Assembly: GCA_965644315.1 (NCBI GenBank)
Contig: CBFFRQ010000044.1
Span: forward strand, 62,001-126,000
Source of the DNA: Caecitellus pseudoparvulus
Taxonomy: Eukaryota > Protista > Bigyra: Bicosoecida
Length of the DNA: 64,000 nt
Reading direction: 5' to 3'
The notes under the pieces: generated by a model
What the model saw: the letters and a program-made list of their open reading frames with translations, nothing else
Told to the model about the DNA's origin: nothing
The model's database searches: none
Made by a program: the position numbers and the translations under genes
Part shown: piece after piece, positions 53,810-64,000 of the stretch
Layout: each line of letters starts with the position of its first letter
How positions within the stretch are numbered: position 1 is the first letter of the stretch

Positions 53810-55215
53810 TCACTCCACATCTGCACTGCGCTGTGAAGCTGAGTGCTGGCTGCTCACATCACTGCACTCGTCACCGCTGTCAACAGGGCCGGCGCTCTGC
53901 CTCACCCCACCGTGCAACGAGGCAGCCGAGGGAGCCTCGATGCGAGGGCTCTTGCTCGGCCTCTGGGCTGCCTCCATCGAAATAGCAGCACCCCGTGACG
54001 GAACAGCCCTGCCCCCCCCCGTGGCGTTGGCGGTTGCGGCTGGGGTCAAAGCGGCAAGACCACCTCCCCCCACTGCGGCGGAATGTGGGGGTGCGCTGGA
54101 CTGTGGCGCAGGGGGTGGGCATACGCGCTGCAGGAAGCGCATGAGGGCCTGGGCGGGCTGTGGCGGACGGCAAGGGTGTTCCGGCGGCATGCTGCGTTCC
54201 GCCGCCGCCACGCGCTGGGCGTATGCGGTGGCGGCAGATGGCCCCGCTGCACGGGTGAAGGCCTGGATGGCTTGCAGAGTCGGAGCAGAGGGAGTGGTCA
54301 GGGCTGCCGGGGAGATGTCAGCGCCAGTGCCTTCCCCCCCCACCTCCACATGAGACGGCACCCACTGCGTGCTGCAGCAGGGACACCGAGCACAGTCAGC
54401 CCGAGGGCGCTTGGAGCCACCTACGTGGCCACCACCCCCCGTCAGTAACTGCACAGCGCAGGGCCAGCAAAAAATGTGGCTGCACGGCAGCACCACAGGG
54501 TGCACGAACACCTGCAGGCACTCAGGGCAGGTTGGCGGAGAGTGGCTGCCGGTGGAACTAGCACCTCCTGCCGACGCGACGACGGCTCCCCGGATGTCGG
54601 GGGAAAACACGAACTTGTACCATTTGGCATCAGCGGTGCCAAGTGTCAGGACGTCGCCTGCAACCCTGTGCGCCGAAAACGCGCGCGAATCGTGCACCGG
54701 TGCGTTTCGCCAGAGTTTCGGGACACGCACAACTCCTGCCACTCCCGCTTTGGCAGCTGCTTCCTGTTCACAAACGTGCCCCAAACGGAGACATCCTTGA
54801 TGAACCACTGCGATCCCCGGTGCTCCACCATGACATGCTCCCTGTGAACCGCAGGAGCAGGCAGTACGTGCCCTCAAACACAAGCTGCGCAAGCGACTGC
54901 CCACACCCAACCCGATTCAACCTCACCCACCTCGACACTGACTCGTACTCCTCACAAAAGAACACCTGAATTGACGATCGGTGGCCACGCCCAAGAGATC
55001 CCTGCAAGCAAAACCACTCCACGACCTTGCGGCACGGCGAACGTCAGCAGCCCCACCGCACACATAACACGCACGCTGAACGCTGGCGGCAGTGGGATGA
55101 GCGCTGGAGCCAGCTCCACCCCCTCAGGTGGCTGCCAGTGACGGGGAAGCGCAGCCTCCCACCTGATAAGCCCTGCGCATTTCTCTGAGGAACTCTCCGC
55201 CACTACCGCCGCCAT
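53810..55215 (-). CDS. FHA + RING E3 ubiquitin ligase (RNF8/CHFR-like), 4 exons
   Basis: Spliced FHA: GSLGR..SVSR-EH..WFIKDVSVWGTFVN..L-VAGDVLTLG; RING: CPEC..LPCSHIFCWPC..CPCC. Confidence 0.85.
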
Positions 55216-55329
55216 TCTGCTCCGTGCCTTGCAGCGCAGTAGCTTGCGGAACGCGGCTGTGACCCAACAACGAAGCCCAAGAGCGTAAACGAATCTGAAG
55301 CACGCGTGAGAGGAAGCTGAAACGGAGCT

Positions 55330-57900
55330 CAATGCCTGAGCAGTATGAATTGATTTTGCCCGACCAGCCCCAATGCGAGACCAGTTCTCAAACATGACGA
55401 AGAGCAAGAACTCAGCAATCCACCCAACCGTGCATGCGACACACAGCCCATCGAAAGGTCTTCAACCGAGAGGCTATGGAATCTTCTCGTCTGGTAATGA
55501 GGTACTTGGGGGAGCAACAGGTAGAGTCACACTGTCTCACCCACAACTCAGCAATCAATGCCCCGTGATTCAAGTGCAAAGACGCAACGAGTAAACTACC
55601 TCGTTGGATTCCTAGAAAGATACACTTGCTTGCGACAAAACAAACTGGGCAACAGAAAACGAAATCCGACGGGCCCGAAGGCTCAGCAGTCGCAACACCA
55701 CAGAACCTTGTGCGAGGCTGCCAAAGCACAGGACACTCTACCAACAGAAGTCATGTATCAAGAAGAAGTGGGGAACACAAAGCCACCAGTGAAAGACAGA
55801 TACAACTGAAGTCGCGCACGATATGCAAGGTTTTCCATGCTCTTGATTCGCGCAAACAACGTACACGTTTGCATGCAAGAGATGAGAGAAACTCGTTCGC
55901 CACTGCAAAATGGCGTTTTGATATCGTCCAGTAAAGGTTGAAGATTCCGACGCAACAAAATTGTGTTCTGCGCGAAGAGCCAAACATGCGACAAAGACCA
56001 GCTTGCTTTCTTATGGTTTGAAGCGCCATCCTCCCGTTTAGCCCCTGAAACGTGTGAAAATTGCCCCTTCTCCGGAAGGCCTGGGGCTCATGCTCGCTGC
56101 AAAGAAATCACATTCGACCGCTCTGGCTGTGTGCGCATCAAATCTGCTGCTCACTGTGACGGATTGATAGACTGGTGGGGCACGACAGAGTATTGATGGC
56201 AAAGTACAAGCATTTTGCGAGAGAGAACCCTGGCAGTCCCATGTTTGACACACTTTCCTCCCCAATTCGAAGACTTGCACACAACTCTCACGATTCTTTG
56301 TTTGATCGCCCACATTTCGAACGAAGGGTGGTTTCAGAAAAATGAAGATGAAAGGTATGCAATGTGTGGTCCAGAAAGCTAAGACTCACCGTACACCTCA
56401 ATGCATATGCGACCATCAAGCTTTGACATAAACTTGCAGTGCCACCACAGCTTTTCAAACATACTGTCATTCACAGTGGTAAAGTCATCGCAAACTTAGG
56501 GGAGTGGAGTCCTGGGAGCTTGCAATTTCAATCTTGAGTGGAGGGCTGCATCTTCAGACACATGCTTCTTTCGGCATGTAGTGAAGATTTTCTCGTCTAC
56601 ATTCAACTTTTCCCGCTATTGAAGAAAAGTCACTGCATATAGATCGAAATACAAAGTTCATTCAAAGGACAATGATTCATACGCTGAAAGCCGACGTCCG
56701 AGTATGCAACTTTGCGCTTGGATATTGTGGTGACACATGTGGAGTGTGTTGACGCATGAAGTCTTCAAAGCATGAATTGGTTCCAACAGAAAGCAGAGGT
56801 GTTGGATCCATCGAGCTCGTGCACCAATCCGATGCCCATACACAGCATTCATCGCACATTCCACTTCGATCTGAATCAAAAAAGCAAGTTTAATAGATGC
56901 AATGATGAGCAAACCTGAATCCTTGGAGAAAGATTGCGAGCCATCAAAACAGAAGTATCGGCACGAAAAACAAATGCTTGCAACGCCAAACATGCTACGC
57001 TTTCCCTGTACGGATAGCCCAAGTTGCCTGAACAAGAACGAGCTGATGGTTGGTGCAGTAGAAGCGAGACACTTCTCTTTGATATTGGCGTCGTGCACAA
57101 AGACTCTGATTGAACCATTCTCATTGGAACGCTTGTCTGAGTGCATGCAAGTGCATCAAAGGCGGTTTGATCGACTCAGTATCCTTTCCTCCACATGATG
57201 GCGAAAGTCAATTGCTTGTATCTTCTGTTGCAAGACTGACTGGATTTGTGAAGATAGCCTTCCAACAGGTTGCAAGTGTGGAATCAGCTACTGACTTGAA
57301 GATGATCTGGATGGTGCAAAGTGCAAAGTCCTACAATGAAGTATTCACCTGCCAAACTTGTCGGCTGCTATCGATGGAGATAGTGAATTGGCGGGGATGT
57401 CTGCCAATGTAGAACGAATGGCTTCATGACCACCTGCCGGTTACCATGTTTGAAACCACAAGATGAAGACTGTCTACCGTCAATCTGCACGTCCTGTGGC
57501 AAGGTAGTCAAGCTTTGCCGCGGGCTCTACGCGAGGCAATGACCACGCCCATGCATGAAGCATGCGAGTTTCCTTGACCCATTGATTACCTGGACAGACT
57601 TGAACTGTATCGTGGACAATGGTGACCATTTGGCAAGAGAAGAGGCCCGGGATTCTCATGGTTGGCGCTAATATCCTCCCAGAATAGTGTTTGTCTTGAA
57701 GTATGTCGTAATGGCGGCATTTGGAGGAGTCGGCATGTTCCATTTCCGGTCAGACGCATCAAGAATCCACATTCAAGCACATGCCACGGCACTGCATTCA
57801 TTTGGCTGTACTGTTGTTTGCGACTTGAGGCACTTTTCATTCGAGGATACTCGGCAGTGCGTTCTTGTGCCGTGAGTGGTCTTCCAGAGCCCGCTGCCTC
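55330..57900. other. Low-GC, apparently non-coding island
   Basis: Abrupt drop in GC (line 56581-56640 is 22/60 G+C, versus roughly two-thirds in genes); no recognisable ORF. Confidence 0.8.
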
Positions 57901-60626
57901 CTCTGTTTTGGCGCCGGCAGTCTCCAAGTACAGTCCTTCCCCCTTGCTTGCTTTCTGCAGGATATCCCAGTGACCTCGCAGGTTGGTCCCGTCCACAACG
58001 CGGATGCCCAGCTGCCCTTCCACATGCTCTCGCATCCTGTCTGAGACTGTGTGTGTCAAGGCAATCATGGCGCCGCCATCCTCAATGCGGAGGCTGCCTT
58101 GCTGCCGGTACCCTTCAAAGCCTTCCGCTCACTCGGACATTTCCACAGGTTTTGACATTTTATCCTTGTGCAACATTAGAGCGGCAGCAATCAAGTCACC
58201 CACAGCACGCACAGAGGGCTTGTGCTTCCGCCTGATGTCCTCCCGCTTCGCTTCGCCATACGGCTTCACACCCATCAAGCCTTCCACTGCCTTCTGCACT
58301 GCGGCAGCCCCTGCATTGTTGACATCTCCGTTCTTTAGCGTCTTCTGGTTGGCTCGCTTCACCTGCACACGCATGATCCACACAGTCGTCACGCCGTCCT
58401 TCACTTCAAAGGACACCCGAATCACGCCGCCACCGTAGACATCTGGGAGCTCCTTCATCCAGAATGCACATCTACGGAGAGCCAAGTACTCCCACAGACT
58501 CTCATGAACCTGCTCAAGCGCCTCGTACGAAGCCCGTGCACGTGCACGCCAATCTGCCTCAGCCCCGACTGCCTGGCCCCCACCACCTGCTCCACCAGCT
58601 CCCGCTGGGGCGTGTGGTGGTCCAGCACTCTCCGCTGGTGCAGCCGCTTGTGCAGGCGGGTCTGCTGTGCGGCCTGTCACGACTGTCATGCGCACTCCCG
58701 CTAGCTTCCCGCCTTCGGTGTCGCTGTTGCTGGCCTTCACTTCACGGCTTGCTTTTTTCCCTTCACCGCTTGCATCTTTGCCTTCGTGGCTTCCACTTGG
58801 GCCATCCCCATGACATTGTCGACTGTCATGAGAATTTCCCCGTCTTGGCCTGGCATCCTCGCCAGAGCGCGGGCAATGGGCAGCGCGGCCTCCTGTCCGT
58901 ACCCGTTGTACCGTATCCACGTCATGGCTTGGAAGTGCACCTTTCCACGCGCATAACTGCGGTACACTCCCAGACTGCCCAAGTCCAAGTTTTTCCCGTA
59001 CTCCACAAGCCAACCCTTGTCGATAGCGCTGTCAATGTGATGTGTGGCCGCTGGAGTGGTTGCAGCTGCCCCCTGCGCCGCGCTGTCGCCTGCTGCTGCC
59101 GCGGGCGGCTGCTCAGGAGACTCTTTTTTCTCTCTTGCGCGTCTGTCTCTTGATACAACGTAGCGTGTGGGGCGAAATCAAAGTATGGTAGCGTTTGGCA
59201 GCTCTGCTCTTACTTCATCCGCAACGAGAGCAAGGAATGAGTGCATTACCTACTTGAGGTCTTCACTTGACTTGTCCAGGCCCTCTGTGACCTCGGAGGC
59301 TTGGCGTTCTGGCCATGGAGATGATAGCTCCCATTCTTGGAAAAGTGTGGATGCAGCATGTGCCAGCTCCCGGGGTGTGTGCCCGTACAGCTCCAGAGCA
59401 CGTTTCAGCGAAGATGCAAGCCTTTCCTCGTCGCTCATCTCATCCTCCCCCTCCAAGCGCTGCAGGAACATTTCGTCAAGCTTCCTCGCCATTTCCAGCG
59501 CTGCTTCTGAGGGCTGCTTCTCCTCCTTCGCCGCCGGTGCACCTGGTGCCTTCTGTGCTGCGTCCACAGCTGCGCCGGGCTGCTGCTTCTTTGTTTTCCC
59601 TCTGTATAGTGTGAATGAAGGGTCGACCGCTTTGCACGCGTGCGAAAGCAGGAAGGACTTGAGGGAGTCCTGCGTCCACATGGCACCCTCCAGGCGTCTA
59701 CCTTTAAGCTTGGTCTCATTCCAGTTTCCTCGCAATGACCAGTACGTAAACTCAGGTGGGAAGTCATGGGGCTTTCCGTCAGATAGGAACAGCTGTCGGG
59801 CGTGTTGAGAACTGGAGCAGACCACCATGCCAATGGCGGGCTCAAACAAACAAAGAACACCCTCCATTTGACTTTGCCATCGACAAGTGGTTGGGAAGTC
59901 AAACTTCTGTTCCTGAAAGAGGTTCTCTGCCTCATCCACGACCGCAATCACCGCGATGTTGGCCTTCTTTAGCAAAGCGCTTGCGATGCCCAGCCGGCCA
60001 AGAGTACTGGCGCCCAGCATCTCTTCATCCAACTCGGATGACTGAGCCTTGGTGCTTTCATGCAAGGTGAAGATGTCAGATAATTGCTCATCTTTTACTT
60101 CGTCGTCTAACGAAACTGTAGCATGTGCGGCGAGGTTGCGGAGCACCTCTGCTGCTTCTGGGTGACGATCCAGATCTTCGAGCTTTTCAGCAATCGACTT
60201 AAAGAGCCATTCATGGAAGTTTCCAGTGTCTGAGGAACTGCGGTCTTGAAGATCAGTGATACAGCAAATGGTGAGCCTTCCGTCCGCTGCGCTCATGTTC
60301 ACCTTGTCCAAGACATCAGCAAACGTGTTGAAAAGGTGGGACTTCCCGGTGCCCTTTGAGCCGGTGAACAAGAATGCCTTCGGTGTTGGCGGTGATGAAT
60401 GCAAAGTTCTCGTCATTGATGCCATGGGTTTGAAGGCTCGTGCCAGGTGCCCCATGGGCAGAAAACCGCTCTTCTGGTGCAGCACCATCTTCTTCCACAA
60501 GCCTCCATAAACCCTGGGCACCCCGGCTGGGCGGCTCACGCGCAACCCAGACCTGCACAGCTTCTCAAACGGCCCTATCTTGTGCCCACTGGCTTCAGCC
60601 TCCGTGGGTAATTCCGCTGCTGCCAT
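57586..60626 (-). pseudogene. Disrupted P-loop NTPase + restriction-endonuclease-fold (Mrr-like) gene, Crinkler/RHS-effector-like architecture
   Basis: Walker A FLFTGSKGTGKS, Walker B VIAVVDEAE; frame continues past TAG 59250-59252 and TGA 59178-59180; one frameshift near 58.8 kb; PDVY...RVQVK; TGA 58129-58131 then ALTHT..GIRVVDGTNL..HW. Confidence 0.7.
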
Positions 60627-61778
60627 GCCTGCGAGTCACAGCCCGGAACGTGGCCGCTCAGCCACGTGCATCCAAGTACGGCGGTGTTGCAAGTCGCAAA
60701 CCTGCACTCACTTCTTGTTCTTTGTAATGTTCAGTCACCTCTACTGTACAACGGGGACGTTCCGCTTCGAGCTCGACTCCAACGCTGCTTGCAAATGGTG
60801 CAATGCGGAAATCGAGCCGCCACACACCACGCAACGCCAGCGCCGGCCGCGCCCAGTCAGGCGCAAGCAAGTGCAAGCAACCTCGGAAAACCACGATGTG
60901 CTGTGCAAGAAGTGTGACGGGTCGAGTTGGAGGCGGGGGATGGGCGTGCTGCGGGGAGTTTGGCGTTGTACAGTGAATGGCGTTTCCAGGGAGAGTGCTG
61001 CTGCGCTGAGGGAGGGGGTGTCAAGCCCCCTCAGACGTGTGCACAACGACACAGGGTGAGCGTCCAAGCTCCCCGTACTCCCTCATATCCCAGACTCGCG
61101 TGATATCGACAGTTCATGGTCTCAAGCTCCAACAGTGCCCTCCCGCGCAGCTCTACTGCCAGGTCAAGACTCAATGGCAGCTCTCACATGCTGCTTCTCA
61201 AGCTCATGGCGAGGTGCCCGAGCAAGAGGAGCCCATGATTGACCTTTATCACCTTCTGCCGGTGGTTGCAGCCTAGGGGCTCGGTGCTAGCACACTCCTA
61301 TCCGCCCCGTGCGACTCTGTGACTCTCAGTCGTAGACTGAAGTAATGTCATCGTCTCAGGCAGATTGGATATCTCAGCAGCTATGCGGTCGGCAGGACTC
61401 GCCTCCAACGCGAGGCAGTGTCCTCACATGCTTTTGGAGGTATGTGCTCAAGTCCGTCACGCAGCCACACGGCGCCACGGGCCCCTGAGGACTTGCGATC
61501 AGCGACAAGCGCTGCTCTCGTGCCGGCATGCACGGCGATGTCACGGCTACCCCCTATGCGCCCTCAACCCGATCCAAGTGCATGACGATCCTGAGAAGGA
61601 GCTCGGGCATATCTCTGCAGCACAGGCAACCCACCTGTGAGGGGGAGTTCCCCAGAGCTCCGCGCGCCCGATCAAGTCAGCGATCTGCTGCAAAGGAGTC
61701 AGAGTGATGCAGCAAATGTGCGGCGCGGTCGCAGCAAATGATGACAGAGCGATCAATGCATTTCAGTCGCATCTCAAT

Positions 61779-64000
61779 TTACAATGCTACACACAGCACC
61801 CCGCGGACATCCTCCACGACACAGGAGGCGTCCTGTGCTGCATCACACAGGGCTCGGGCGCCATCCGACGTGATCCAGGCGCCCCACGTCCCAGCTCCAT
61901 TTTGGGCCCGCACACTCACGAAGAGCGTGCCACCAGACGGCCACGTGAAGCCATCTTCATCTTGGTCTGGCCCAGCCAGCAGCGCACTGGCCTCGAGGGA
62001 GTCGCCCACGAGCCTGCAAGGCATGATGTCATCCCGCCCGGCGTCAGAGCCAGTGCTGCCAATGCACCACTCGTACTGCAGGATGCCCGACTCTTCATCA
62101 GCTGCTGGTGTCCATGAGGCTTGGAACACTGCACCAGGACTGCCCAAGATGCAGTCCGCGTCAACGTTGCCGCCGTCACGCACTTCCACTTCGTCGCTCC
62201 AGGTGGGCACCGTGCCGTCCAGCAACACAGGCTGCCCCAGCACGAGCTGCTGCGAGCCCGCACCGTTGGCCACCTGGGCAACAGGGAAGAGGCGGTCGGC
62301 ATGTCCCCATGGCATAGGCGGTACGGCGAGTGTGAGCGCGTTGGGGCTGGGGGCCAAGACAAGCGTTGCGGGGGCGCTCAGAGGGTGGGATGTGGCACTG
62401 GGTGTGCAGGAGCACAGGCCACCCTGCAAGGCGAGCACGGCGCCTGAGTCAACTGCTGCGCTTGACACTTGAGATACAGTGGACAGTGCACAGGACTCAT
62501 CCACGGGACCAGCTTCAATGCGCAGCAGGTCGGAGCTCAGCTGTGCTGGACCTGAGCCGTTCCACTGGCCAGGCACAACGAGCACGGACAGGGCGGCGCT
62601 GGCCAGTCCTGATTGGGCATCTCCCAGGCCCTCCATCCTCAGCACCAGCCCGGCCTGCACAGACTCCACAGTCGTGAAGGACGCAGGCTCCAGGCCAGGC
62701 ACGGTCTGCACGGCGCAGGCGGCCGCGGCGGCCTCCGCCTGTGAGGATCCGGGACCTGGCAGCAGTGCGTGGCCGCCTCGTGGCGTGAAGATGCGTGGCG
62801 TCAAGGCAGGCGGTGTCACATCCAACACACCCAGAGGGGCGATGACTGCTGTGGACAGGCCTGCGAAATTCGTGGCGACAGCTGTGAGCCACAGCGTGTC
62901 GCCGCCCTCCAGTGCGCTGGAGTTCAGGGTCACTTGGGCCAGGCGGCCGCTCTCCACCTGGTCAAGGTCGGTCCACGAGGCGCTGGATCGCACGGCGTCC
63001 CAGCTGCCCACTTTCCGCATGTGCGGCATGGCTTGAGACCCCAGAGCCGTGGCACCCACTGTGAGGGTGAGGGAGCTGAGGCCGGCACCAGAATCGGCCC
63101 AGTCGTCCAGGGACAGCTCCACGTGGCTCATGGGCACGATGAATGGCAGGTCGCTGCCAGCCTGCGCCACCGCCTCTGCAAGCTGGCCAGCTGTGATATG
63201 GGCTGCACTTCCAGCAGGCAGAGCCGAGACCTGCAGCGTTCGGGGTGCACAGGCGCTGGCGGTGAGCGCAGGCATGCGGAAGGTGCGGGTCCACGGCAGA
63301 GCTTGCTGCAGCGCGGCAGCTGGCACGGAGGCGGCGGTGGTGGTGCCACATGCTTGCACATCTGGGAGCAAGGTCAGTGTGCCAGACAGTGGGTTTGAGC
63401 GCACGAGGCGGACAGTGGGGGAGGACAGCTGCAGGAGCCCGCCACCCGCCTTGCTCACCACGACTTGCACCCGGAAGCCTTGTGCAGTTGCCAAGGTGGC
63501 ATCCAATGGCACACTCTGCAGCAGTCCTTCCGAGGCGGAAGCCACCTGTAGCAGTTCATGCGATGCCACGGACCCTTGAGCCACCACTTCTTCTCCCGCA
63601 GGTGACACAGCGAGCAGCGTCCACGCCATGCCTTGCAGCGGCACAGACACAGCCGAAACAAGTGGCAGGCGGAAGGCAATATCCCGTGAGCCACACTGCA
63701 CCCAGCGCTGCACTGGAGGCGCCCAGGTAGCACTGACAACCGGCACTGGGACGGACGGCACGCCAGGCTGTGGGGATTGGTCACGTACACGTGCATCATT
63801 GCCGTCCACGACGAGCAGGGGCGACGGGTACACTGACTGCTGCCCGGCGCCGTTCGCTGCTCGCATGAGCAACACAGTCACACGTCCGGCCAAGGCTGAG
63901 GCAGGCAGCGTCAAGAAGGTGGCATCCGCGCTGAGCTGCACAAAGTCGGCCTCGCCAGCAGCGTGCCACTGCGGGGAGGAGAAGCTTCCACCGGTGCACG
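61779..64000 (-). CDS. Large beta-sandwich (FN3/Ig-like) repeat protein, probably extracellular; 5'-truncated by the window
   Basis: Recurrent W..D..SG(L/I) ... V.A.N.AG ... D.T.P units (WADSGAGL..VATNFAGLS..DVTPP; WTPAADEESGILQYEWCIGS..VRAQNGAG). Confidence 0.65.
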   Translation of the reverse strand, partial: CTGGSFSSPQWHAAGEADFVQLSADATFLTLPASALAGRVTVLLMRAANGAGQQSVYPSPLLVVDGNDARVRDQSPQPGVPSVPVPVVSATWAPPVQRWVQCGSRDIAFRLPLVSAVSVPLQGMAWTLLAVSPAGEEVVAQGSVASHELLQVASASEGLLQSVPLDATLATAQGFRVQVVVSKAGGGLLQLSSPTVRLVRSNPLSGTLTLLPDVQACGTTTAASVPAAALQQALPWTRTFRMPALTASACAPRTLQVSALPAGSAAHITAGQLAEAVAQAGSDLPFIVPMSHVELSLDDWADSGAGLSSLTLTVGATALGSQAMPHMRKVGSWDAVRSSASWTDLDQVESGRLAQVTLNSSALEGGDTLWLTAVATNFAGLSTAVIAPLGVLDVTPPALTPRIFTPRGGHALLPGPGSSQAEAAAAACAVQTVPGLEPASFTTVESVQAGLVLRMEGLGDAQSGLASAALSVLVVPGQWNGSGPAQLSSDLLRIEAGPVDESCALSTVSQVSSAAVDSGAVLALQGGLCSCTPSATSHPLSAPATLVLAPSPNALTLAVPPMPWGHADRLFPVAQVANGAGSQQLVLGQPVLLDGTVPTWSDEVEVRDGGNVDADCILGSPGAVFQASWTPAADEESGILQYEWCIGSTGSDAGRDDIMPCRLVGDSLEASALLAGPDQDEDGFTWPSGGTLFVSVRAQNGAGTWGAWITSDGARALCDAAQDASCVVEDVRGVLCVAL

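Follow-up and report, generated by a model that had tools for sequence, protein, structure and literature searches.

A probable pseudogene in the protist Caecitellus pseudoparvulus belongs to a multicopy family of predicted ATPase, winged-helix and nuclease-like proteins

The subject of this work is a broken gene in a 64,000-nucleotide stretch of DNA (the window) from the protist Caecitellus pseudoparvulus. The window is positions 62001–126000 of contig C44, in an assembly of 30.6 Mb, 215 contigs and ~65–67% guanine plus cytosine (GC). An open reading frame (ORF) map, combined with frame-aware tblastn, identifies a single minus-strand gene in four pieces at window positions 57586–60626. The ORFs at 59250–60626 and 58737–59006 lie in a common minus-strand frame, split only by a TAG codon (59250–59252) and a TGA codon (59178–59180). 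Those at 58129–59013 and 57586–58068 use a second common frame and are split by one TGA (58129–58131). Frame-aware tblastn with four intact paralog proteins recovered one collinear gene. Paralog residues 1 to ~630 aligned from 60626 to 58740 in one frame, and residues ~620–938 from 58779 to 57814 in the other. Because the two tblastn frames overlap there, the frame change was placed inside 58740–58785. The pieces match the paralogs, intact proteins of 920–952 amino acids (aa) encoded elsewhere in the genome and collinear with the broken gene, at E = 0 to 1e-117, far above chance. The original prediction of one gene broken into four ORF pieces, made from the DNA letters, is thus upheld, with three stops, one frame change and a length of ~950 aa. 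The motifs it quoted are also present. The parts of the locus are as follows, in the direction of transcription.

60627–61778, minus strand: upstream region of ~1.1 kb, part of a repeated cassette (presumed promoter and 5′ untranslated region), running from the 3′ end of a giant repeat-protein gene to the start codon.
59253–60626, minus strand: piece 1, of 458 aa, covering the N-terminal helices, the core of the AAA+ ATPase and part of its lid of helices, with Walker A (GSKGTGKS, 60339–60362), Walker B (VVDEAE, 59925–59942) and the conserved R/Q after strand 4 (59787–59813).
59250–59252, minus strand: break 1, in-frame TAG; also in scaffold L037 and in a diverged paralog on contig C37, the intact C39 copy (L003) being open here.
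59181–59249, minus strand: piece 2, 23 codons in the frame of piece 1, corresponding to a well-modelled helical segment of the intact paralogs.
59178–59180, minus strand: break 2, in-frame TGA; also in L037, not in the C37 paralog.
58786–59177, minus strand: piece 3, in the frame of piece 1; end of the helical region and winged-helix module, with AIDKGWL (59007–59027) and LGVYRSY (58953–58973).
58740–58785, minus strand: break 3, the frame-change zone relative to intact paralogs; the old frame stops at 58737–58739. This break is known from this assembly alone.
58132–58739, minus strand: piece 4a, in the second frame; disordered linker rich in Ala, Gly and Pro, followed by the initial half of the nuclease-like C-terminal domain, with helices from 58557, KELPD (58441–58455), GGGVIRV (58414–58434) and RVQVK (within 58345–58371).
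58129–58131, minus strand: break 4, in-frame TGA in the helical insert of the C-terminal domain; known from this assembly alone.
57814–58128, minus strand: piece 4b; end of the nuclease-like domain, comprising the final two strands of its core and helices, with MIALTHTV (58045–58068), GIRVVDG (in GIRVVDGTNL, 57979–58008) and HWDILQKA (57949–57972).
57586–57813, minus strand: run-on tail, an open frame that continues beyond paralog homology (which stops at ~57814–57860) into a unique low-GC island.

The upstream region is 70–79% identical at the nucleotide level to ~9 paralog loci, and 97.7% identical to L037, an independent metagenome scaffold. Downstream, the window copy is without the normal 3′ end of the family. 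Instead, the gene is directly followed by the low-GC island (54800–57600, ~46–53% GC), which is unique in the genome. In other cassettes this position is taken by a fragment of the giant repeat-protein gene, so the window copy lies where the repeated unit ends. The island had no Rfam match and no known RNAs were found across 54–62 kb.

The intact relatives expected by the original prediction were found when the genome was searched. The N-terminal piece is present at no fewer than 39 loci and the C-terminal piece at no fewer than 19, both counts being lower bounds. Full-length frames (~896–1053 aa) are open at 11 loci, and five of these are close paralogs of the window copy, on contigs C39, C33, C86 and C121 (two copies). 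Intact members encode proteins of ~885–950 aa and are intronless, which agrees with the prediction of an intronless gene. The copies are deeply diverged from one another (34–73% protein identity), and individual paralogs have orthologs that are 96–97% identical in other samples. In close paralogs the repeated cassette runs from the 3′ end of the giant repeat-protein gene through a shared spacer of ~1.1 kb to the family gene. At C121:1–14000 (L031 and L002) three copies stand in tandem with a period of ~5.2–5.9 kb and fragments of the giant repeat-protein gene between them. Contigs C121, C86, C33, C55, C84, C35 and C123 begin or end inside family copies; therefore, the family probably breaks the assembly.

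Three forms of the protein are encoded. Full-length members begin with short helices, which are followed by an AAA+ ATPase, its helical lid and a winged helix; a disordered linker rich in Ala, Gly and Pro then leads to a C-terminal domain of ~200 aa. A second form, of ~714 aa, is represented by five conserved copies of 702–746 aa (L039–L043, on contigs C99, C144, C115, C81 and C190). These keep the ATPase and winged helix. All that remains of the C-terminal domain is its final strand and helix, after which comes a basic tail of KRKAR type that resembles a nuclear localisation signal. The third form, of ~556 aa, has ~12 copies that end inside the winged helix. In a distant subfamily, a short gene lies ~1–2 kb downstream of a long gene on the same strand (C113, C119 and C83). 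At C113 and C119 an ATPase-only paralog of ~556–610 aa was seen ~1 kb downstream, and this short protein and its long neighbour are almost the same in their N-terminal halves.

The condition of the window copy can be judged against L037, which is 97.9% identical over window positions 61701–58780 (2.9 kb). In L037 the product is likewise 458 aa long, with the same final residue, and the second stop is present too; both stops are at identical positions. Hence, stops 1 and 2 are not assembly errors. Both are older than the strain split of ~2% between window and L037. The frame change and third stop (58129–58131) lie beyond the end of this scaffold. We compared the nonsynonymous to synonymous rate ratio (omega) between the window and L037. 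The values were 0.71 for piece 1 (12 nonsynonymous and 5 synonymous changes) and 1.33 for piece 3 (17 and 4). The pooled value was 0.96 (29 and 9), and neutral evolution was not rejected (p = 0.85). As a control, intact orthologs on C19 and C134 were compared with their 96–97% identical counterparts. Here, the pooled omega was 0.42 and neutrality was rejected (p = 1e-5); pairs of intact paralogs gave values of 0.39–0.58. Two points tell against decay of the window copy: compared directly, window and control differ in constraint at a borderline level (Fisher p = 0.052), and an omega of 0.88 was obtained for one of the control pairs.

The original prediction described the gene as recently inactivated. 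This is only partly right: stops 1 and 2 predate the strain split, and stop 1 is shared with another paralog. The C37 paralog is ~56% identical in its N-terminal part and has a stop at exactly the position of window stop 1, while its later breaks are different. In a sliding-window comparison, the N-terminal part of the window copy was closest to the C39 and C121c copies. The tract at 59.3–59.1 kb was closest to the C37 paralog (84%, compared with 52–72% for others). The linker and C-terminal domain were 87–96% identical to intact paralogs. On these alignments, the window copy is a mosaic produced by exchange between paralogs, with three parts that each have a different closest paralog. On this comparison, stop 1 is common to C37 because it lies in an exchanged tract, and paralog exchange has probably carried a null tract from copy to copy. 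Among close paralogs the DNA for the disordered linker (58300–58700) is the most conserved, at 87–96%, and the flanking domain-coding parts are 62–80% identical. The linker-coding segment may be a hotspot of sequence exchange or be under a constraint of some kind.

If only the nuclease part had been discarded, the 458-aa first piece could be kept as a working protein with nucleoside triphosphatase (NTPase) activity alone. Forms of this kind, NTPase-only or nuclease-deleted, are common and intact in the family (the ~12 near 556 aa and the five conserved near 714 aa). Furthermore, the stop after residue 458 is common to the other strain and to the C37 paralog, whose first ORF is still open (463 aa), and the omega of piece 1 is below 1. 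However, that omega derives from 17 changes and is indistinguishable from neutral. The tract with the shared stop has its own history, being 84% identical to C37 where the N-terminal part is 50–62% identical; exchange between paralogs suffices to explain it without selection. The 458-aa product would also lack the winged helix and part of the lid, and the natural short forms keep both. We therefore regard retention of piece 1 as rather unlikely. Rescue by splicing is unlikely too, as it would need three introns that remove segments predicted by the models to be well folded and that are conserved. With three in-frame stops, a frame change, a lost 3′ end and neutral evolution since the strain split, the window copy cannot make the nuclease. 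Taken together, the window copy is probably a decayed pseudogene of a lineage-specific multigene family whose intact members join an ATPase and a winged helix to a probable nuclease. As a dead copy, the locus matters little in its own right; it serves mainly to mark turnover in the family and to illustrate a null tract common to paralogs.

The GC content of the window copy is 55–59%, the lowest in the family; other members have 58–61% and host genes 64–68%. The view that the gene is compositionally foreign is weak on these figures. The offset amounts to only 6–8 GC points below host genes, and it is a property of the whole family, subfamilies of ~35% identity included. Because the offset is small and family-wide, and because no viral or prokaryotic relatives were found by an HMMER profile search, in IMG/VR or by a pattern-limited prokaryotic scan, the word foreign overstates the case.

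To characterise the protein, folds were modelled and profile searches run with natural intact paralogs, chiefly the C39 copy (L003:1501–4356, 952 aa), and not with a stitched window gene. Across 25 members, G89, G94 and K95 of Walker A are invariant, D231 of Walker B is nearly so, and the Arg/Gln pair after strand 4 (R275 and Q278) is nearly invariant. At E values up to 0.01, the Pfam family AAA_22 matched 21 of these members and AAA_16 matched 20. The C39 copy reached 25.4 bits with AAA_22, for which the cut-off is 27, and a short paralog passed with 28.1 bits. Weaker matches to ATPase_2, TniB, IstB, NACHT and ORC-CDC6-like families were mostly under the curated cut-offs, and no single Pfam ATPase family is clearly the home of the protein.

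The full-length AlphaFold model has a predicted local distance difference test score (pLDDT) of 77.8 and a predicted template modelling score of 0.75. Foldseek matched it to ORC/Cdc6, PAB2304 and SSO1545 with probability 1.00 and E ~1e-5. With VIA-align, the best match was PAB2304 (2qen), at Z 14.5, with 324 of 350 residues aligned to model residues 46–559. SSO1545 (2fna) followed at Z 14.0, then TnsC at 13.8–14.0, Cdc6/ORC subunits at ~13, a plant nucleotide-binding leucine-rich repeat protein (NLR) at 12.6 and MuB at 11.7. The full-length Cdc6/ORC chains 1w5s and 2v1u gave Z 12.4–12.5, through residue 558. The original prediction of a P-loop NTPase followed by a possible winged helix fits well with these results, since the matches to 2qen, 2fna, 1w5s, 2v1u and the NB-ARC region of the NLR run through residue ~559, past the core and lid. 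The N-terminal half is therefore modelled as an AAA+ ATPase of the ORC/Cdc6, archaeal ATPase_2 or TnsC type, with canonical Walker A and B motifs, a lid and a winged helix.

The C-terminal domain was analysed separately. Two AlphaFold models of it agree; the domain alone has a pLDDT of 74.7 and the same region scores ~85–92 in the full-length model. The order of elements is helix, helix, strand, strand, strand, three long helices, strand, helix, strand, helix, and the strands are at domain residues 33–36, 46–54, 57–68, 157–168 (after the helical insert) and 186–190. This is the core order of a restriction endonuclease (REase), with a helical insert of ~85 residues. An exhaustive VIA search of 48,161 chains returned PD-(D/E)xK nucleases for most of the top 50 positions (Z 4–6.3). 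The best matches were AF1548 (Z 6.3, 98 residues, root-mean-square deviation 3.1) and CdiA-CT (Z 6.1). Cdn1, FokI, NucS, LlaBIII, R2, SdaI, PaqCI, Avs3/Avs4 and McrC were further PD-(D/E)xK matches in the top 50, and a second look agreed. The named neighbours in the ESM Atlas were HamA, PDDEXK_GAPS4, Mrr_cat (three clusters) and DUF4365, with template modelling (TM) scores of 0.28–0.39. Language-model atlas scores for the domain alone were below 0.8 and uninformative. The assignment follows from the convergence of three structural rankings on one superfamily, together with a motif pattern, and not from any single score.

That pattern, E-x-P-D...G-x-D...R-x-Q-x-K, is conserved in 27 members, the most distant of which are 19% identical. 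All 27 have G43 and R64, 26 have E37 and most have P39-D40. D45, just before strand 2, is found in 22, and K68, at the end of strand 3, in 20; Q66 is found in 19 and is His in five. The members without K68 have mostly also lost D40 and/or D45. Correlated losses of this sort are what a coupled active site would show if it had decayed in part of the family.

Several observations weigh against reading the C-terminal domain as a nuclease. All the structural scores are middling (Z 4–6.3, TM 0.28–0.41). Sequence searches with the domain were blank in Pfam, PADLOC, NCBIfam and the PDB, and a Foldseek search of the domain model against the PDB was not significant, the best match being MspJI (E 0.046). 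No match was made by the Mrr_cat hidden Markov model (HMM; PF04471) in a six-frame search of the whole genome, although 10 of 14 control genomes were matched. Aligning the 27-member domain profile with a profile of Mrr by hhalign gave a probability of 1.6%, the Mrr profile being shallow (13 members, effective number of sequences (Neff) 1.5). Gly takes the place of D45 in the window copy and also in C121b and C121c, which are intact close paralogs, and several distant members are without K68. Part of the family may be catalytically inactive.

These points could be accommodated if the C-terminal domain were not an active nuclease at all, its likeness to the three-strand core being due to chance, or if it were an inactivated REase retained for DNA binding or oligomerisation. 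The modest structural scores and the lack of a sequence-level link would fit such a domain, as would the replacement of D45 in C121b, C121c and the window copy, its absence from the C134 copy and the replacement of K68 in 7 of 27 members. Inactive REase domains on NTPases are a known category, and a cluster with the Pfam family NA-iREase1 is among the language-model results for the whole protein. Against this, PD-(D/E)xK nucleases dominate three independent structural rankings, and D45 and the Q-x-K strand occupy canonical positions. Moreover, E37, G43, R64, Q66 and K68 are conserved across members that are 19–25% identical, and the losses are correlated in the manner of a real active site that has decayed. 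We consider an inactive or coincidental domain unlikely. The PD-(D/E)xK fold, in the models, is very probable; confidence that every member is catalytically active would be lower.

The original prediction also proposed that the REase-like C-terminus was Mrr-like. The REase part agrees with the topology and structural neighbours from fold searches, albeit with modest scores. For the Mrr part, the motif pattern and structural resemblance stand. However, Mrr_cat did not match the domain at E values up to 5 and the profile comparison was not significant. In that comparison only the half containing hhTTH...hhhDG..L aligned (pairwise E 0.0065, probability 6%), and the D...QxK half did not. The Mrr profile was made from the E. 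coli-type Mrr, whose retrieved homologs were all at least 77% identical, hence its shallowness. Mrr-like is a statement of resemblance, not of membership.

Relatives outside the genome are few. A word-indexed search of 5.8 billion proteins gave three, and an exhaustive HMMER profile search with the C-terminal domain, against 1.84 billion representatives, gave 32 proteins only. In most of the 32 the domain is at the end of a protein of 850–1014 aa (the library is without names). One relative is a single ORF among eukaryotic genes, its neighbours being PUF/NOP9, FGAR-AT, CRAL-TRIO and WDR90/Cfap43. Another, also a single ORF among eukaryotic genes, is beside genes for a dynein light chain and an ABC transporter. 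No viral relatives were found in IMG/VR, and a pattern-limited scan of prokaryotic genomes gave no prokaryotic relatives of the C-terminal domain. By these searches the family is a chromosomal one of a narrow protist lineage. It is clade-restricted and uncharacterised, and Pfam has no model for its C-terminal domain. Protein CAE7698441.1, from a 4.4-kb contig labelled Symbiodinium sp. KB8, is 89% identical to a C121 copy. Judging from this identity, the contig is probably from a co-occurring protist related to the present organism, not from Symbiodinium.

Among known systems, the whole-protein language-model neighbours are prokaryotic clusters with the architectures ATPase_2/AAA_22 plus Hjc, Mrr_cat plus HTH_IclR plus ATPase_2, and Mrr_cat plus nSTAND1. 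They score 0.93–0.95, with 185–201 common features, and no Crinkler cluster is among them. DUF1703-type fusions comprise an AAA+ module related to the archaeal ATPase PF01637, a helical middle and a C-terminal PD-(D/E)xK domain (PMC1913061). These are the same three parts in the same order as in the family, and the ATPase_2 proteins PAB2304 and SSO1545 are the best structural matches of the family N-terminal half. The Pfam families derived from DUF1703 matched neither the full-length protein nor its C-terminal part at E values up to 5, nor any of 25 members at up to 0.01. Unlike these fusions, the family is eukaryotic, and it is intronless but chromosomal. Its proteins exceed them by ~300–400 aa, include a long linker that is disordered and, in the nuclease core, a helical insert of 85 residues, and are encoded at 39 or more loci. 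We consider DUF1703-type fusions to be a precedent as close as the Crinkler modules.

The original prediction assigned the gene to the Crinkler/RHS-type effectors. The protein would then be a delivered toxin, with a module of NTPase, helix-turn-helix (HTH) and REase aimed at the DNA of another organism. NTPase, HTH and REase is the commonest C-terminal architecture of Phytophthora Crinklers (CRNs), and the header domain is the N-terminus that defines the class (PMC5289972). In the account of Zhang et al. (2016) relayed there, the REase is proposed to be the toxic part and the NTPase its regulator. Headerless Crinkler-like selfish genes have been reported in free-living eukaryotes (PMC12957317). 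The present family is likewise eukaryotic, multicopy and fast-evolving, with its NTPase, HTH and REase in that order. This order is all that matches. There is no header (ubiquitin-like or LxLFLAK) or other delivery signal and no detectable sequence link: no Pfam Crinkler match was made at E values up to 5, and 25 members contain neither LxLFLAK or HVLV motifs nor a signal-like hydrophobic N-terminus. In the model, the stretch ahead of the ATPase core is helical and runs on into the ATPase without a break. Searches that give names returned no CRN-named protein or cluster, the 32 HMMER matches (from the unnamed library) mostly have the family's own architecture, and relatives of the family sit among ordinary protist housekeeping genes. 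Membership of the Crinkler/RHS class is not borne out, and a delivered effector of this type is very unlikely.

ORC/Cdc6, TnsC and MuB resemble the family in the ATPase core and lid, which superpose at Z 12–14 (with the winged helix for Cdc6/ORC), and in Walker A and Walker B; the Arg after strand 4 is conserved in the family. They are without a nuclease, TnsC having TnsA as a separate nuclease partner. A role in replication is disfavoured by the family's copy number, its restricted distribution and its decay. The likeness to TnsC (Z 13.8–14.0) and MuB raises another explanation: a TnsC/MuB-like AAA+ regulator fused to a TnsA-like nuclease could move its own cassette, and the window copy would be a dead insertion. 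The weak TniB and IstB matches, the 39 or more loci, many of them at contig ends, and the C121 tandem array are compatible with a mobile-element protein. In prokaryotes, NTPase-REase pairs have been linked to transposons, as relayed in PMC5289972. However, the window cassette is not flanked by terminal inverted repeats or target-site duplications. No transposase or integrase is beside the cassette, and a reverse-transcriptase (RT) ORF close to the C134 copy is not conserved as a neighbour. The copies are diverged (34–73% identity) and not near-identical, and paralogs have orthologs of 96–97% identity in other samples. Subfamilies have unrelated neighbours, and the likeness to ORC/Cdc6 and ATPase_2 proteins is equal to or better than that to TnsC. 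Hence, we think it improbable that the family is a mobile element moving its own cassette.

The Avs and NLR-type immune proteins (signal transduction ATPases with numerous domains, STAND), which have Mrr-like nuclease effectors, also combine a nucleotide-switch ATPase, a winged helix and a PD-(D/E)xK effector, and the Avs3/Avs4 nuclease domains and a plant NLR NB-ARC are among the family's structural matches. Conversely, the family nuclease is C-terminal, so the order is reversed, and the protein ends just after this domain. No C-terminal sensor repeats of the tetratricopeptide (TPR), leucine-rich (LRR) or WD40 type were found in Pfam scans or in the full-length model. Against this background, the intact family is a new, uncharacterised variant of the known NTPase, winged HTH and REase design.

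By analogy with ORC/Cdc6, TnsC and MuB, the ATPase and winged-helix module would bind DNA and assemble in a nucleotide-dependent manner. Assembly could then license or position the C-terminal PD-(D/E)xK nuclease for DNA cleavage. A role in genetic conflict fits the copy number, tandem cassettes, paralog exchange, moderate omega, nuclease-less derivatives, pairs of long and short genes and pseudogenes better than a housekeeping one does. From these family dynamics we infer such a role, either in defence or in a selfish toxin-like system. Proteins that join an NTPase to a nuclease occur repeatedly in the anti-phage defence of bacteria and among Crinkler toxins; to our knowledge, eukaryotic examples outside secreted effectors are poorly charted. 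We tentatively suggest, as a possibility short of even odds, that the family is a protist-built, ATP-controlled nuclease system, put together from an ORC/Cdc6-like AAA+ ATPase, a winged helix and a divergent PD-(D/E)xK domain independently of Crinkler headers. The full-length proteins would be the killing or restricting part, and the ~714-aa and ~556-aa forms co-assembling regulators, decoys or antidotes. If so, the NTPase-nuclease defence or toxin-antidote systems of bacteria would have a eukaryotic counterpart, one that diversifies by tandem duplication and exchange between paralogs. With 39 loci or more in a compact 30-Mb protist genome, the family is a candidate for an immune or selfish system specific to protists, and a tractable one. 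It is also a clean case for how an ORC/Cdc6-like switch couples to a nuclease.

The surroundings of other copies provided some further observations. In the distant subfamily, an ORF without a Pfam match precedes the long ATPase-nuclease gene on the same strand (L025 on C113, L026 on C119 and L028 at C31:840000–849999). This upstream ORF is open for 1021 aa at the edge of L028 and ends in ...SSRPKRGK. It is unrelated to the giant repeat protein, the neighbours of the subfamilies are unrelated, and no conserved partner gene was found. The contig ends that carry copies have no telomere repeats to indicate a subtelomeric location. On C134 (~15.9–19.3 kb; L029:898–4329), the RT ORF is an open frame of 1144 aa with an RVT_1 domain (E 8e-25). 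It starts within telomere-type (CCCTAA)n repeats (L029:959–976 and 989–1012), 0.5 kb from a long family paralog, and may, from these sequence features, be part of a telomere-associated or Penelope-like retroelement.

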